Assembly (NCBI GenBank): GCA_000708835.1
Contig: DF236962.1
Location: 186,001-250,000, forward strand
From: Klebsormidium nitens
Lineage: Eukaryota; Plantae; Klebsormidiophyceae
DNA length: 64,000 bases
Reading direction: 5' to 3'
A model generated the notes under the pieces. The model was not told the origin of the DNA. It did no database searches and saw only the letters and a list, made by a program, of their open reading frames with translations. Positions 12,249 to 20,824 of this stretch are shown here, one piece after another; the first letter of the stretch is position 1; the number at the start of each line of letters is the position of its first letter. Both the position numbers and the translations under genes were made by a program.

Positions 12249-13804
12249 GGGTGCCTGTCTTAGTGAAAGCACCCCTTAGTGAAAGCAAGAGTTGCCAGAG
12301 TTTCTCATGCGACGTTGAATTGCAGCCGTCCATCTGTCATGTAGTTACGTGACTTGGTTGACAAGCGCGGATTTTGGCACGCTCTGTTGCGTTCACCAGC
12401 TAGAATCCTTGATACAGGTGCCTTAACCAAGAGCCCTAACCATAACTTCTACGCGTTGTATACCCTAACCATCCAACCAACCCCACCGGGGCCCACCTTG
12501 TCTCCCGTCTCCCATGCGCCTACCTACTTATCTCGAGTAAAGTGCCTATAATGTGCCTGGAAATGGGAGTTTAATAATACCAGAGTGCCCAATTGTCAAG
12601 CCGGCCAGCTCTCAGCGAAGTCCTGTAAGGCATCGGACGGTCGTGAGGCAGCTGACATCATAGAGTGATGGCCGAATGCCGTCGATAAATTGCGGGGTAA
12701 CTGAGCTGAGTCGTAACCGCTTGCAGTTTCCTGTGAAAACCTCCAATGTGTTTGATGGCGCCAGTACTGTTTAACTTGATGTTAGAAGCTGCTCAACATG
12801 CCAATCTCCTTTTGTTGTATTGCAGGTCCCTTGAGCAGCACGACCCGCATAGAATATACTGTACCCCAAGGTCACATTAGACTCGGTTGAAGTCTGCAAG
12901 AAGTTCCCCTGCATTGAGCTGAGCTGAGGCCCACCAGGGAGGTTGATCACTAATGGTATTTAGTTGCCAAAGCTGGCCAGCTTTCCATCGTTTGTCGTTT
13001 TGCCGAAGGAGACTAAGACTTTCCACCTCCGTCCTGGTGACCTTCGGCTTAGCCTTAATTTGTGTATGGAAGCACCACCCTTTGTATGAGACTTATCAAA
13101 ATTGAGTACGTGGCATTGAAGGCACCAGATTGCCATCTTGCCGTTGGATCTTCCCAACGTTTCCTGAATGCGGAGGAAATGTTCAACAAACCTCATGACT
13201 GGTGCAGATTCTCAGTGAGCTGTCAATATTAACGCGTTTGTAGAACGTGTTCCACTAAACTGCGTCTACCAAACATCCCTGCTTGTAAAGTGGACGTGGC
13301 GATGGAGTCTCGAATGAGTATCTGCCAATGGCGTTGCCAGCAGAATTTGCGTTTTCAGAGACGAACGAGCTGTCTGCTGGGACTCTTGCAGCTGGCAGCT
13401 TTGGTGGTTGTAGCAGGTGAGGAAGTCTTGTGTTTTTGATTTGTTGCTGTTCAAGCTAATTTGACCCTACCGGTACAAGCTGAGTTCATCAATTGTCAGT
13501 AAAAGCTGGAAAGGAGACTTATGGCAGTCACTTAGAATAGTTTCGAAAGTTGGACGACAAAATTTGGTCCTTCCGTGATTCCCTACCCTCAACAACTGAC
13601 CTCTCCCTTTGTCCATCATTGGCTTGATTGAGAACCTTTTGCAATCGAGTCCATTACGACGCTCTTTCTCATTTAGGAGCGATTTCTGTTTGCATGTCAT
13701 CATTAACATCGGACTACAGCATGCTTACTGAGGACCTGTATAGGTGCTACAGATGATCCCCCAACGATCTAACAGCAGCTGATTAAGAATCATCCCTGCA
13801 ACAG

Positions 13805-16800
13805 GAGCTGCCACCACCCCCACAGTCCCAGCCGGATTTGGGCCAGAGGTCCTCCCTGGGCCCTTTCCGGACACTTTGTCTGGTGTCCAATTCTCCATGA
13901 CTGCCAGTGGGGTCAGCTCAGGCAATGGCACTGACACCAGCAGTCGCAGTCTGAGCATCTGTGGCCAGGGCCCTGTGCCATGGACTGCAGCCAGCTTCCA
14001 GCAAGGGGCAATTGCAGCAAGGCTGAGTGCAAGCAGGTGAGGGGGCGCAGCTTGTGCGAAATAATGGATGCAGCGCCTGACTGTCCTTGGATGGGAAAGG
14101 TATTCAGACAGGATGACAAGCGACAGAGCGAGCAAACGCTTGGAACCAGTTAGCAGCTGACTCTGCAAACCAGTGAACTAATATTATACTGAGGCTGTCT
14201 GCTTAATTAGGTGGAAGAGCAACTCGGAAATAGACCCCTCATAGCTGGCGGTTGAAACTAGCTGTGCCAGAAACTTCTGGAACATGCTTCACCATGCACG
14301 GGCAGCTCTTGCAGATTTTCCTTATGTCGCTCGGCTTGGTGAGGCTGACAAAAGAGCACGTGCCCTTGCAGTAACTCGAGCTTGGCGCTGACCGAGACTG
14401 GCCCCGGTGTCAGCAACAACTCGATTGCAGTTCCAGGCCAAACGGTGAGCTCGAATGCTGACCTGATTGCTGCTGAAATATACAGCTTGGATTATGTATA
14501 TGAAGCGTGTCACTTAGCACCTTGAACACTCGTCGTAGTACGAAGCCAAAAGAAGAAATGTCAGCGAAAATGAATCGTCTTCTTACAAAGAAGACGGTGT
14601 CCTTGAAATACTTGCCATCAAAATGAAGAGGGGTGACATACGTCAAAGGCAGCCCTGCTTCCAGGCCCTGACGCCTTCGTATGACAGTCACGGCTTCGAG
14701 TAGCGGAGTCAGGTGAAGACCTGCGAATTGTCCAATCCTCTTACTCTTCTCATACCAGAGTTATGTCTCTGCCACATATATTTTTCAGAATATATGCTTG
14801 GTATAGGAGGCTTAGGGAGCCTCTTTTCCCCCCGTTTTCCCGCCTTAAAACTCATTTTTTTCTTTTCTCCAGGGCTGGAGCCCCAGCACGGACTTCGGCG
14901 TCTTGTTAGCCACTGTCACGGCCAACGGCATGAACTGGACTTCTGACGAGGCGCCGTTTTACCCCGTGGTCGCCGCTGGTGTGAACAGCTCCTCAGCCGG
15001 CTATGACATGAGGACGGGCCAATTCACACCAGGGGGAACGGACATCGTCAGCAGCAAGGCAGGCCAGAGCGGGGGGACGTGCGATGCGGACGTCGGGGCA
15101 GTGTGGTTTCCCTTCTCGGAAGGTAACAATCAAGACAAACAGTTCCGTTGCAAACCGAAAGAGTAGAATAATGCCCCGTGAACGTCTGCAAGAGCAACAA
15201 GGTTGAGCAGAAAGAGCAACAAGGTTGAGCAGAAAGCTTAATCACGTCGTTGAGACAAAACGTGAGCCAACGACAAGGACGACCAGGGCCCTTTTTCTGT
15301 CTGCGCTACGGCACCGGTTGAAGCAACCTAATGCATGTCCTCGCTTTCCGATCTTTCCAACATTGATGTAAGAAAGACGAACGGTCGGACAGAAGTTTGA
15401 CCGAGAGCACGTGTCCTGAAACGACGCGAGACAACACTAACAACATTGCGCGCTTTTTGCGGTTCAGCAGACTGCCGACAGCCGCTTCAAAGAAAGGTTG
15501 CAGAAGCACTCATAAGCCGACGAAATTACCAAAAACCTAAACAAATTTTTCCATCGCAGGTTGGATGGCGGCTTCCCTTGCCGCCCCCGCCAACGTCAGC
15601 GCGCCCGCCGCTTATGTTTCTCCAACCGCTTATTCCGCCAACTTGCCCGCTGAAGCCGGTCAGATCTTTACTTCCACACCGACGGGCGGACATCTGACGC
15701 TCCCGGGAGTGCGTGCTAACAGCGGCGGGCTGCTCTTTGCTGTCTCGTGAGCCCAGCTACTAAGTCTGAGCTTTGGATCTGGCTGTGTTTCTCTGCAAGA
15801 TTGCAAACAAGCAGGTTTAGCGGACCGCGTGCAGTCGTTTCTGCTTTTTCTGTGGAGACGCTTGTCGAACACAATTTCGTGCAGCATACAAAGAATTACT
15901 CTGTATACGTGCGTTAAACCAATTTTTATCAAGTATGATCAAGTTCAAAGCTCAGAGTCTGCCTTTCTCAACTGATGGCGCGTCACTTGAAGAGTTGAAC
16001 GACGACCTTTCATGGTCAAAGACGTTTCAGAGTCTGAGAAATTCACGCGTCGCCCCAGTCTTCTAACCAAACGTCTGTCATAGTCAAACAGTTCGCCTGC
16101 GAAATTCAATTTCATTCAACGCCACTCATCATACGTTGACGTGCTTTTGCAGAACGGTGGACACCGCTCAGACAAACGGGTCAACCAGTGTTGTGTCCGT
16201 GGCCCCTCAGGGCGTCAGCTGGACCGTTCAGATCCGCAGTGACGTCAGCTTGGCGACCGGCGGTTTCGCCCCGGCCGCACAGAGCGCGTTCTCGTTCTTG
16301 TACCTGCCCTTCGGGTACACAGAAAAGTGAGCGTAGCAAACGATCTTTTCTAGGCCGTTTCTGTCAATCGCTCAAAGCGATGGCTTCGTGGCGTTCAAAT
16401 ATTGGTGGGAACGTCTCATACCTCGAGAGAGGTCTTGCTTGGCGAAACCAGACTCTTCGGTTCGTCCCATATGAACTCAGCTGAATGCCGGTCTGCAAAA
16501 GGAACGGTATACGTTGCGAATTTATGAGGTCCATACTACTTTGAAGGACGCCGGGGACCAGGCGCGTTTCCAGTAGAAGCCTTCGAATTGCCCTACAGAA
16601 CGGAACGTAATCCCCAACAGGGCCAGCACGCGGTTCAAAAGCCAATCACGCCCAAAAGCGCATTCAGGTACCTAAAAGCAGGCACATTCAACATAAGAAC
16701 TCCTGACGATCCGGATGGAGTTTCATCAATCCATGACAATTTGTGGCCGAGCAGCTCATTCCGGTGTACTGATTCCAATCCCCTTCCCTGCAGCCTGATC

Positions 16801-18928
16801 GGCGGCCACGTGGACGGCGTGTCCGGCACGACCGTATTCGGACAGGGCGCCTCCGTCGTGTCCAAAGTGGACGTCGGCCAGTACCAAGTCCGCCTGATGA
16901 AGCCGCGGAACCGGAACGTCTCGTGCTCGTAAGTCGCCACCCTAGTTACTCCCCTTTGCTCGGCCAATTTCTTGAGCTTTCTCCATTGTGTAGCGAACTC
17001 TGGGCAGGCGACTGAAGTTTACCTCAAAAGATCAACCTCGAAAATTCTGACCTCAAAGAACTAGGTCTTCCCATCCCTTGCTGCTATCGGACATTCTGGT
17101 CTACGAAATAGAGTTTGCTTAACTAGTTCCTGACCAGGCCCATTTGCTCTTGTGTCCAGGGACGGCGTGCTTCTCCTTCAAACAGTGGGTCTGGGGCCGG
17201 ACGGCAACACGAGCGACGCCGTCCTGTCCTACGCCTTTCAGGGCGACGGCAGCATGCTCGTGCAAGCCAGAACGGTCGCCGTCACGGGTGACGGGTCTCT
17301 GACGTACAACCTCACAGATACAGGTGCGAAGAAAGGTGTCCGGCAGTGGGATGCCTGATTCTGGATGATGACGGGGCCCCTTCTTTCATGCTTGATGAAG
17401 TTACCTTGCGCTATAGGCATTCGACGACGTTTTGACTCGAAGAAGGCCTTTATGTTTTCAGGCCGGCCTTCACTCAAGCGTCAGAACCCCAGTCGTCAAT
17501 CTGCCCATGAAGAGGTCCCTTCTTCATGCTTAACGAAGTTAGCTGGCGCTACAGGCGGTTGACGTCTTTATGACTTCAGGAGGATTTTTGTGAGTTCAGG
17601 GCGGGGGTTCACCTTAGCGTCAAAGTGCCCAGTCGTCCTGTATACCGTTCAGATTTAAATCCCATTGCAGAGTCTTACGTGCAGTCTGTAGCCGCCTCGG
17701 AATCAGATTTTACCTTCTTGGATTATTTTAATCGCCCTCACGAAATAAGCTCAACAATAGCATCTCGCGTGTCGTTGAACGATGCACTTTTGAATGTGCT
17801 CCACTCATCAAACTTTGACGACCATTATGACCCTGTTGCTCTTGTTGGCGTGCAGACTTCTACTTTGCCTGGGTCGACTTTCTGGAGCCAATTCACCCCG
17901 CTGGTTATGGCGCTCCTTCAATCGTTACTCAGCAAACGGAGTCTCCGGTCCCCTCCGCAGCTGCAGTCTCGGTACTCGGTGAGTGCGAAAACTGTTTCAT
18001 GGTATCTCCGCTTGCAGTCGGATCTGTTACGGCTCTAGCAATTCTTGCTACTTGGGGGCGGAAGCATGATTGCCAGTGAGTATGGAAAAGCCACCACTGA
18101 ACATCAGAGTGAGATGGTGGTATCAAAACTTACACATGGTACACAAAAGTTGTTTTTTGCGTCCTTTCGTTGAACTTTTCAGCCTTCATGATTTTTCATT
18201 GTACCTCCAGCGCTGAGTAGAGACGATATCATTGGGACCAGCAACCTTTGCATCATGCGGTTACTTTGATCTAAAATTGTCGTCCGCGGAACGCTGACAT
18301 GAGCTTATGGCAAATTATAACAGGACATATGGCAAACTCGAGACCTCGTCACAACGAGGAAAGGACGACGCTTTAAGCTTAGCTAACCGACCGTTCTTGC
18401 TCTTCTTTTCCAGCTCCTGTTTCGGGCCCTTCATCGTCCCCCGCAGCGGGCCAATCCGCAGCCGGCAGCCCTTCCCCCGCCCCCTCCGCCCCACTCTCCC
18501 CGGCCCCGGTAGGCGACCAACCGGCCGCCGCTCCCAACCAAGGACCCGCCGCCGCCTTTTCCCCCGCCCCCGCTCCGTCGCCTTTTGCCGGCGCCCCGGG
18601 CGGAAGCGTCCCGTCAACACTTAACCGCACCGCGGCGCTACTAACCGCTGGCGCATCTTCCCAGGGGTCTTCGACGGCGACCAGCGCGTCTCTGTCCTTC
18701 AGCACGAAGGTCGCCCTTGCCGTGGGGGTATGCGTTGCGGTCGCGGTGCTTGGGGGCGCCGTTTTGATTGTCGTGCGGAGGAGGAGGATTCGGTATCCAA
18801 AAATTAGTTTGGATCTGACGCGGATGAACAGCCTAGAGGCGCGGCGGATGAAGGGCATTCCGCTCGCGGAACTCGGGAGCGGAGGCGGAAGGACGTCCGC
18901 CACTGACTTTAACATCTTGCAAGTCTAG
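13805..18928 (+). CDS. Uncharacterised single-pass type-I membrane glycoprotein: beta-rich ectodomain, AGP-like Pro/Ala/Ser stalk, TM helix, short cytosolic tail; 5' end not resolved
   Basis: In-phase GT-AG exons 13805-14036, 14372-14444, 14873-15122, 15560-15746, 16153-16314, 16794-16928, 17160-17323, 17856-17978, 18414-18928. The last exon encodes PAAPSPAPSAPLSPAP..., the TM segment VALAVGVCVAVAVLGGAVLIVV, then RRRR and the stop at 18928. A possible further exon lies at 12826-12870. Confidence 0.75.
15190..15236. repeat. Perfect 22-bp tandem duplication in an intron of the membrane-protein gene
   Basis: aagagcaacaaggttgagcaga x2. Confidence 0.9.
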
Positions 18929-20824
18929 GGCCAGGGGACCTTTCTAAGTTATTCATTCCAGTTGACTGAGCCAACCTGTAGATGGCCAGAATCAACGGCA
19001 GGCCAACCAAAAGAGATTCTGACCCGTAAGCTGGGATCAGAATTAGCCGCGCTGAAGGATCGTGTACTATGTTACAAGTTTCAAGACCCGCTGTTTGCAG
19101 ATACAAGATAGGATTAAGCTGAACCTACTGACAAGAGCTGAGTACAACAAAAGTTGTGCTGCGATTCATGATCTCATAGAGCGTTGCTTTTACAAGCATT
19201 TCACAAACGTGTCACACGATTGAACAACTGAGCCAGACAAGCCTTCAAGGCGCTTGTCATGCATTTACTCGCTCATAAATGGTGACCTATGGCATACAAC
19301 GCGTTCCTCTACTGCCATCGGCCGGCTTCTTCTTTTAGCAAAAGCGTGCATGATAAAGCATCCATCGACTCGCTCTTTTTCTGATAGACCACGCATATTA
19401 ATCATCCACTTTCTGCCGACATCTATGACATCACGAAAAGGGGTCGACTTCAGCACTGCGAAGCGACTCGAATCTGTCGTTTTGGGAGTTTCTTGAGTTC
19501 CAAACAAGCTGACGCACGGGTTATCAGGAGGGACAAAACAGTAAGCCAAGAAAACTTGGCATGTAACACAAGGGGCTGGTTTTAGGCATGCAACCTGGGC
19601 ATCGGTGTACACGCACTGATACATCGCCGATAAAAGCACTGCGCACAGGACTGGGTATAATCAGCACTTCAAGATTTTGATAGTCAGTCTGCAGACCGTC
19701 GTGACGAACGCATTCAATCGCATCAACCAGATGGACAAGAAGTAAGGAAGAAGCCGGTTTGCCATCGACGGTGAAGGCTGAAGCTTTCCCAAAGATTTCT
19801 CGCTTCCGGCTTCAGACAGCATTTCCCTTTCAGAGAACGATGCGACTAAGGCATTGCATATTCCTTTGAGGAAAACAAGTTCGTTATCTTCCAAGAATGG
19901 ATCGGTGCAGCCATGCTCTTGGCGCCTTACCCAAAAGACTGGTACAGAAGTGAGACGACGGCGCGAGCCGACAAGCCGCATCTGCTACGGCCGAGATCCA
20001 ACAAAAACTGTCCATCAATTTCCGCTTTCCTAGTTATTACTCCAGCCGGAGTGTTTTCTAACCTAGGCCGCCTGCCAGACCCCCGGACTCAGCTCAATCA
20101 GCCCACCCCAGAGAACCAGTTCGCTCATCCTCCGCTCGCTTGCTTGTCAGGGTGCCGTTCTAGCTCGACGTTCAGCACCTGCGCCGAGCAAAGCATGACT
20201 TTTGCATTCAGAAGCGGTGCAGACTCTGTCAGATTCAATATCATAAAGCCGTTCCGATACACACATTCCAAGCTCCGTAGATATATAGAATGTTAAGGAG
20301 TTGGAAGAGCAATACGAGTTCGCCTACAGTTCTCTTGGAAAAACGACGACCCACAACTGGCTAGGGTACAAGTAGCTGCTTCCGCCCTCTGGTAACGCCT
20401 TTAGGGGCCAACGGATAGCTTTCAAAGTCGGCTTTTGGAATTACTACAGCCGAGTTACCGTAAAGAGCGAGCTTACAACAGATGTTAAATATTAAAGACG
20501 TGAGGACACGTGGGCAACCAAGCAAGAATTACGTTTAAGACCAGCTAATGTTGCTTCAGCTCAACGTTCCTGCGCTGTAACCGCAAGATCGTCTGCCCCG
20601 TTGAACGATTGACTCACTAAGAGGATTGACGTCTCAACCGCTAATGACCCATCGTTCGTGGTTATGTCGGAAGGCGTTGACCAGAACTCTTCAGTCGAGA
20701 TTTTAAAACGTGGCGTCTTTTGCACACTCGAGTGCGCTGACAAAAATTACATGACATAAACACTGACGGCTCGACAATTAGTGGAGACCAGCATATTTGA
20801 AAGGACCGGAACACGATCGATTCA

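Follow-up and report, generated by a model that had tools for sequence, protein, structure and literature searches.

Type I proteins with glycosylated stalks are already known, and yeast sensors of the Wsc1/Mid2 type, like chimeric arabinogalactan proteins (AGPs), are arranged as a signal peptide, a binding head, a stalk rich in S/T/P/A, a transmembrane helix and a short tail. The acquisition of bacterial genes by streptophyte algae is likewise known, GRAS and PYL having been reported as bacterial acquisitions in Zygnematophyceae. No group stands closer to the land plants than the streptophyte algae, whose surface proteins and bacterial acquisitions are central to ideas on terrestrialisation; Verrucomicrobiota are common associates of algae and degrade polysaccharides. 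Here, a gene is described from a 64,000-nucleotide stretch of Klebsormidium nitens DNA (assembly GCA_000708835.1, contig DF236962.1, positions 186,001 to 250,000; hereafter 'the window', in whose numbering all coordinates are given). Ten exons on the + strand, between 13302 and 18928, encode a product that is predicted to be a type I membrane glycoprotein of 651 aa, its ectodomain being one copy of an all-beta module. By sequence comparison, this module represents a domain family that has not been described before and that is unusually distributed, over Verrucomicrobiota, streptophyte algae and marine protists; this distribution points to an ancient transfer of a gene between bacteria and algae.

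The overall layout of the predicted protein is that of yeast Wsc1/Mid2 and the chimeric AGPs, and one eukaryotic member of the family carries a WSC domain. Unlike these proteins, its head is unrelated to WSC, to fasciclin or to other AGP partners, and its anchor is a transmembrane helix rather than glycosylphosphatidylinositol (GPI). The GRAS and PYL cases are comparable in that a streptophyte family has its closest non-eukaryotic relatives in soil or freshwater bacteria; they differ in that the present module was not detected in land plants and that the partner phylum is Verrucomicrobiota.

The DNA in this region of the window is eukaryotic in character and moderately rich in GC, and its open segments are short. 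An earlier note, made from the letters alone, had proposed nine in-phase exons from 13805 onwards, carrying a series of motifs. Reading of the sequence and a script check showed that all nine exons were correct, with canonical GT..AG introns and consistent phases, and that every listed motif was present within them, in the order given, including those written across exon junctions (VWFPFSE|GW, FLYLPF-G-LIGG and NLTDT|DFYFAW). Such an array of exons and motifs is far beyond chance. A further exon (exon 0, 13302–13416) was added at the 5' end, this being an open reading frame (ORF) that bears the ATG and the signal peptide, contributes 38 aa plus one base and ends in phase 1 at a GTGAGG donor, which fits the exon at 13805. 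The ten exons retained consistent phases and GT..AG ends at all introns, and the gene spans 5.6 kb; the coding sequence has 1956 nt and 651 codons, with a single stop at its end, and encodes 651 aa in an intact frame.

The ectodomain module starts in exon 1 (13805–14036), which aligns to homologues and holds the beginning of a first subdomain, D1, with the motif GQGPVPW. Exon 1b (14372–14444) encodes a variable 24-aa loop of D1, both junctions of which occur in an RNA-derived contig, and exon 2 (14873–15122) encodes the most conserved part of that subdomain (GWSPS..GV.LATV..NG, AGYDM.TGQF, KAG and VWFPFSE). The second subdomain, D2, is divided between exon 3 (15560–15746; LTLPGV..GGLLFAVS), the preceding intron lying at the D1/D2 boundary, and exon 4 (16153–16314; W.VQIR.D and FSFLYLPF), where contig X4 covers 16148–16302. 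The third, D3, begins in exon 5 (16794–16928; LIGGHVDG and G.Y.V), extends through exon 6 (17160–17323; DGVLLLQ and LSYAF..LVQAR) and reaches the end of the module (DFYFAWVDFLEP) in exon 7 (17856–17978), together with the start of a linker. Exon 8 (18414–18928) comprises the stalk (18416–18709), the transmembrane helix (18710–18775), the cytoplasmic tail (18776–18925) and the stop codon TAG (18926–18928), and is followed on the + strand by a 3' untranslated region (UTR) reaching at least from 18929 to 19100, as the first record of contig X1 runs from 18705 to 19100 and beyond. An alternative donor for exon 6, at 17335, was set aside; 17323 was preferred, as it gives an intron that agrees in alignment column and phase with those of Chara and Closterium.

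Comparison with related genomes and transcripts bore on the reality of the gene. A word-index search with exon 2, subject to a length filter, returned two ORF fragments, whose source contigs (L001 and L002/L003) were genomic DNA of related algae. In both, the exons of the window were kept in the same order, at 82–100% aa identity in L001 (91% for exon 1, 100% for exon 5 and 84% for exon 8) and 64–82% in L002/L003. Blocks of similarity at the DNA level coincided with exons and faded in introns, the signal-peptide exon included (L001 block 13287–13427). The Nei-Gojobori method, applied to exons 1–7 against L001, the closest of these contigs, gave 0.36 for synonymous (dS) and 0.059 for non-synonymous (dN) divergence (dN/dS = 0.17). 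Four public runs held parts of the locus as short contigs; none of these runs is on record as RNA and their RNA status is a guess. One RNA-derived contig joined 14036|14372 and 14444|14873 with GT..AG ends, while contigs X1 and X3, of RNA type, covered 18684–19100, taking in the last exon together with ~170 nt of 3' UTR. Given the fit of splice sites and phases, the restriction of conservation to exons, the dN/dS ratio and the spliced contig, it was concluded that the gene is real, spliced and under purifying selection.

Two side observations concern the same material. The fifth record of contig X4 (13886–14126) continued without splicing through the donor site of exon 1 (14036/14037), which reflects either a retained intron or pre-mRNA, or else DNA in a run of guessed RNA status. 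When exon 2 was used for an exhaustive scan, the gene was represented by no full-length public protein, only by the ORF fragments from related algae; in the public annotation of the genome, the gene may perhaps be absent or have been modelled without exon 2.

The product consists, in order, of the signal peptide, an all-beta ectodomain of ~440 aa, a Pro/Ala/Ser stalk of 98 aa, the transmembrane helix and a 50-aa tail. The hydrophobic core of the signal peptide lies at about aa 24–38, the most hydrophobic 15-mer having a mean Kyte-Doolittle (KD) value of 2.63. Counts in the spliced model agreed with what the earlier note had described: 11 N-X-S/T sequons for N-glycosylation, where about 11 had been claimed; a stalk rich in AP, SP and PA (69% P/A/S/T, with seven AP, six SP and seven PA); and a single transmembrane helix, of 22 aa, with YPKI in the tail (18794–18805), seven residues past the helix. 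A signal peptide combined with a region of more than 50% P/A/S/T bearing AP/SP/TP glycomotifs defines AGPs, and both are present here; the stalk is AGP-like and probably hydroxyproline (Hyp)-O-glycosylated. AGPs carry O-arabinogalactan on hydroxyproline and often have a GPI anchor; in this protein, the C-terminus is formed by the transmembrane helix and the 50-aa tail, with no GPI signal. A long stalk was found only in the Klebsormidium lineage, the other algal members seen having short linkers.

To place the ectodomain, searches were run with single exons or with database homologues, the joined model being used for counts, intron mapping and its row in the tree. A phmmer search with exon 2 of 1.84 billion cluster representatives recovered 23 distant homologues besides the two ORF fragments, and their sequences carried the motif series of the earlier note over its full length. 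When residues 1–440 of a bacterial member (P0007) were compared with algal proteins, E-values ranged from 1e-47 to 1e-75 over about 400 positions, and tblastn of five family members against the window matched exons 1–7 collinearly and in order. Homology was collinear over the entire module, from GQGP.PW to DTDF.F.W.DF..PL, and the ectodomain was ~35–45% identical to the bacterial proteins. The motif ...DFYFAWVDF..P, which the earlier note had given as bacterial, was borne out, as the bacterial homologues align over the whole module up to DTDF[YV]F.W.DF..PL.

The family was defined through alignment A1 as a module of ~430 aa composed of three beta-sandwiches. Its invariant and nearly invariant residues in D1 and D2 (numbered in P0007) were W104, G111, G121, F132, G146, Y147, G152, G167, W184, P186, G250 and F253; those of D1 were kept in the exons of the window (W, G, G, F, GY, G, AG, WFP), and the stretch GGLLFAVS of exon 3 contains the counterparts of G250 and F253. 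Pfam searches with the exon pieces gave nothing above threshold, homologues had no match over the module in Pfam, NCBIfam or PDB sequences, and the widespread known eukaryotic domain that would have spoken against a bacterial affinity did not emerge from any of them. A feature search of the ESM Atlas gave nothing among named clusters. Atlas clusters of similar shape are labelled 'hypothetical protein', and no paper on the family was found in the literature searched, by gene identifiers or by topic. A Pfam signal of Podoplanin/SKG6-like type on the transmembrane piece was dismissed as noise, being absent in the homologues.

Eukaryotic members were identified in the streptophyte algae Mesostigma viride, Spirogloea muscicola, Mesotaenium endlicherianum, Netrium digitus, several strains of Closterium and Chara braunii (GBG91124.1), all of them with a transmembrane helix and a short tail. 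The gene in the window shares with this eukaryotic subgroup a signal peptide, the module, one transmembrane helix, a short tail and common intron positions. A marine clade, drawn from MMETSP, Tara and JGI transcripts, includes a protein of the dinoflagellate Prorocentrum cordatum (P0045, 460 aa). Here the module precedes a Cys-rich region and a carbohydrate-binding WSC domain (residues 367–436); the gene model begins inside D1 and is perhaps partial. No land-plant member was found when HMMER was run exhaustively with exon 2, nor did any of the 23 homologues with a traceable source come from a land plant.

The earlier note had likened the motif series to a domain of large secreted or PEP-CTERM proteins in Planctomycetes and Verrucomicrobia. 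Bacterial homologues do exist: when one genome of each prokaryotic species was scanned with sequence patterns, with confirmation by tblastn, the yield was 79 loci, nearly all labelled Verrucomicrobiota, with labels that include Limisphaerales, Verrucomicrobiales and Pedosphaera. The verrucomicrobial part of the resemblance was thereby upheld, while the part concerning Planctomycetes fell away, no locus being so labelled. The likening to PEP-CTERM proteins was mistaken, as none of 73 complete bacterial C-termini was PEP-CTERM-like; 68 of them ended in a strand of the form [FY][FY]R[LV]xx. Among loci L004–L082, a beta domain of ~90 aa came before this terminal strand, which is almost the same in all 68 (...[FY][FY]R[LV]xx(P)), and the C-terminal domain looks like a phylum-typical sorting or anchoring domain rather than PEP-CTERM.

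The bacterial proteins themselves are large (~800–1400 aa), secreted and multi-domain, and the position of the module within them varies. Its partners were up to nine Ig I-set repeats, CHRD domains or unannotated regions, with no enzyme domain among them. One protein of 921 aa from a Logan contig (P0003) contained two whole modules in tandem (residues 17–435 and 431–862); this duplication was regarded as recent, because the two copies were each other's closest relatives in the tree. Around the gene of one bacterial member (L086) there were housekeeping genes only, which gave no functional clue.

The fold was modelled with AlphaFold2 for residues 1–440 of P0007, using a family alignment of 21 rows. 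The model was all beta and scored highly (predicted local distance difference test, pLDDT, 91; predicted template modelling score, pTM, 0.91). Comparison by VIA-align with 48,161 PDB representatives resolved three units, at about residues 28–189, 190–312 and 314–423. Four of the top five entries were single-chain trimers of C1q, Cbln1, APRIL-BAFF-BAFF and adiponectin, matched over residues 28–425; these occupied ranks 1, 2, 3 and 5 with weak scores (Z 5.7–6.5), and the module may have jelly-roll units arranged about a (pseudo) three-fold axis. A profile comparison matched D2 with D3 (E = 3e-5, probability 72%), while D1 matched neither. The D1 of an algal member, folded alone, gave a pLDDT of 84 and weak matches (Z 3–4.6) to tips of tailspikes and tail fibres, VP37 of white spot syndrome virus (WSSV), TNF ligands, BclA and H-type lectins. 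In Foldseek searches of the PDB, neither the complete model nor the isolated D1 had a match at E <= 1e-3. In a viral library, the best matches were tail fibres of Synechococcus phages (E 2e-6 to 2e-5, probability 1.00), and smaller proteins of similar shape were found in Cyanobacteriota, Actinomycetota and Myxococcota (template modelling (TM) scores 0.58–0.60 by query and 0.69–0.87 by target).

Two kinds of known structure thus offer a comparison. In the heads of C1q and TNF proteins (5hzf, 5kca, 4zch, 4dou), three beta-sandwich units likewise form one compact head, which serves as a device for recognition of ligands or receptors. Unlike these heads, to which it matched at Z 5.7–6.5 with a root-mean-square deviation of about 5 Å and 6–9% identity, the module has units that are naturally covalent and unequal (about 165, 125 and 115 aa), whereas the single chains in the PDB are engineered, and it has no collagen stalk. 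Pfam models for C1q and TNF found no match in the pieces of the window or in 18 homologues, which does not place the module in either family. The tips of phage tail fibres and tailspikes, which are modules for recognition of surfaces or glycans, recurred as best matches for D1 and for D2 (tail fibres of Syn5 and ACG-2014f; C-terminal domains of the phiAB6, LKA1 gp49 and Pam1 tailspikes). These too differ, with TM-scores of 0.27–0.30 and no sequence family in common, and the phage domains are homotrimers of one unit, whereas the module has three different units in one chain. On the models, the likeness to C1q/TNF heads and to phage tips should be taken as resemblance and not as membership.

From these comparisons a mechanism may be proposed. 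The head would consist of three beta-sandwich subdomains packed like a single-chain trimer of C1q/TNF type, as modelled for a bacterial member, and each subdomain would resemble the tips by which phage tail fibres bind receptors. The head would recognise an extracellular ligand without enzymatic action, most likely a glycan or wall polymer, or else the surface of a microbe. The Klebsormidium head would be held off the membrane by an AGP-like stalk, probably Hyp-O-glycosylated, while the short tail with YPKI would act in sorting or endocytosis and not in catalysis, such that the protein could be an adhesin or a kinase-less sensor of the wall or surface. The reading as a recognition head was adopted because the structural analogues are all recognition heads, because the partner domains are Ig, CHRD and WSC, and because the tail contains no catalytic domain. 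A covalent pseudo-trimer that acts as a non-enzymatic recognition head on an AGP-like stalk, in adhesion or in the sensing of wall or microbial glycans, is put forward tentatively, with somewhat less than an even chance of being correct.

The main functional alternative is an enzymatic ectodomain, such as a lyase or hydrolase that attacks wall polysaccharides. Conservation is strongest in D1, where aromatic and acidic residues cluster with Gly (QAWRP, NGQ.W.DG, GYGYSM.DG.FG, EANID, WFPYDQGW) and could line an active site, and the proteins behind the tailspike-like matches have depolymerase domains as well. However, these matches are to the C-terminal domains for receptor binding or trimerisation and not to the catalytic beta-helix, no catalytic family was found in the Pfam, NCBIfam and PDB sequence searches, and the partners are all non-enzymatic; an enzymatic role was therefore considered unlikely.

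The history of the family was examined with IQ-TREE (LG+C20+F+G4 PMSF; 49 rows, 455 columns; unrooted). One branch, with support of 100/99, divided 21 eukaryotic from 28 verrucomicrobial sequences. Mesostigma grouped with the marine clade (88/89), and Klebsormidium grouped with Zygnematophyceae plus Chara (81/67), roughly in accordance with the species tree. Introns of the genes from Chara (L084) and Closterium (L083) were mapped onto the common alignment. Between Klebsormidium and Chara, six introns were identical in column and phase and two more lay within five columns of each other; four were identical between Klebsormidium and Closterium. Chara and Closterium had three additional introns inside Klebsormidium exon 2. 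The identity of six intron positions implies that the intron-bearing gene predates the split between Klebsormidiophyceae and Chara/Zygnematophyceae, and common introns of this age exclude contamination or a recent transfer.

The intron before exon 3 was common to Chara, and that before exon 5 to Chara and Closterium. It was also seen that the introns at D1|D2 (15122/15560, WFPFSE|GW) and D2|D3 (16314/16794, YLPFG|LIGG) are conserved with Chara, so that the exon structure mirrors the domain structure; these boundary introns were presumably gained after a bacterial origin. The Chara braunii orthologue itself (BFEA01000874.1, 1001–44844) distributes 510 codons over ~44 kb, with 12 introns of up to ~12 kb.

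The earlier note had envisaged a horizontally acquired domain that gained introns and became an algal receptor or adhesin. Kinship with bacteria and the presence of introns both stood up to analysis; the gene proved not to be peculiar to Klebsormidium, belonging instead to an old streptophyte family, and the direction of transfer was inferred. Movement from bacterium to alga was preferred because the bacterial copies are deep and architecturally varied, because smaller proteins of similar shape occur in other bacterial phyla and because phage tail fibres are the best viral matches. Under this account, a single ancient transfer would have carried the module from a bacterium of verrucomicrobial type to an early streptophyte or a green-algal ancestor, where a signal peptide, a transmembrane anchor and introns would have been gained before vertical descent set in; the module would then have been lost in or before land plants and have spread secondarily to the marine clade. 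Taken as a whole (gene, transfer and recognition-head mechanism), this account is favoured as fairly probable.

Several observations weigh against it. The NRGD motif, kept by most members, is lost in Klebsormidium (QQGA), where the stem in the tree amounts to 1.8 changes per site and the amino-acid composition deviates. Support from RNA extends to two of the nine junctions, in contigs of low depth from runs of guessed RNA status. All matches of fold are weak (Z < 8), and the pseudo-trimer reading follows from the ranking of the top entries and not from a strong score. The absence from land plants derives from a single-exon query. A few short contigs from metagenome-assembled genomes carry the module under non-verrucomicrobial labels, and the scan patterns were taken from verrucomicrobial members (bacterial subset A2), making the count a lower bound for other phyla. 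Lastly, two reciprocally monophyletic clades in an unrooted tree do not give the direction of transfer.

That last point leads to the converse history, with an origin of the module in early green or streptophyte algae and the capture of a copy without introns by an ancestor of Verrucomicrobiota, in which phylum it later diversified. The eukaryotes are indeed not nested within bacteria, the two groups being reciprocally monophyletic, and the bacterial side is by sequence essentially one phylum, as a single capture would give. Yet three or more deep subfamilies can be told apart among the bacterial copies, across several orders and with varied architectures (Ig repeats, CHRD, tandem modules, N- or C-terminal position); the prokaryotic look-alikes and phage tail fibres argue that the fold has prokaryotic roots; and the transfer of a spliced gene from eukaryote to bacterium is generally the rarer direction. 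This converse history was accordingly judged improbable, a little more so than an enzymatic head.

Far less credible was membership of the ectodomain in the catalogued family DUF4082 (PF13313), suggested by a match of the exon 3 piece to profile positions 65–117 of 143 (E = 0.01), since its 16.2 bits fell short of the gathering threshold of 28.4 and none of 10 full-length homologues, nor the full-length bacterial proteins, matched even at E 0.01. An artefact, through bacterial contamination of the algal assembly or a decaying pseudogene, might be suspected from the identity with bacterial proteins and the lack of a public full-length protein, but it is already refuted by nine spliceosomal introns in consistent phase, a spliced RNA contig and an intact frame, by intron positions common to Chara and Closterium, by exon-only conservation at a dN/dS in the related genome that indicates no decay, and by a signal peptide, stalk, transmembrane helix and tail of eukaryotic type.

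With the transfer from a verrucomicrobial-type bacterium retained as the preferred account, the family gains interest in several respects. It comprises single-pass surface proteins with a large head that no domain library names, it offers a datable transfer between domains of life, and it is a candidate component of wall sensing or of adhesion between algae and bacteria. Its compact architecture of three beta-sandwiches would be worth solving, and the large secreted verrucomicrobial proteins that contain the module, which number in the hundreds, are unannotated and equally unexplored. In its boldest form, the proposal would be that a natural single-chain head of C1q/TNF-like shape, derived from Verrucomicrobiota, became a kinase-less receptor or wall sensor of algae, spread to protists of dinoflagellate type and was lost before land plants; this is speculative and, taken in full, rather doubtful. 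If a single-chain head did come from bacteria, it would represent an unrecognised, pre-embryophyte class of cell-surface recognition protein that has persisted for hundreds of millions of years in several algal classes of the plant lineage.

One minor feature lies downstream of the gene. A block of 30 nt, 3' of the last exon (19136–19165), was 93% identical in L001 (6814–6843), and may be a conserved part of the 3' UTR or a regulatory element.

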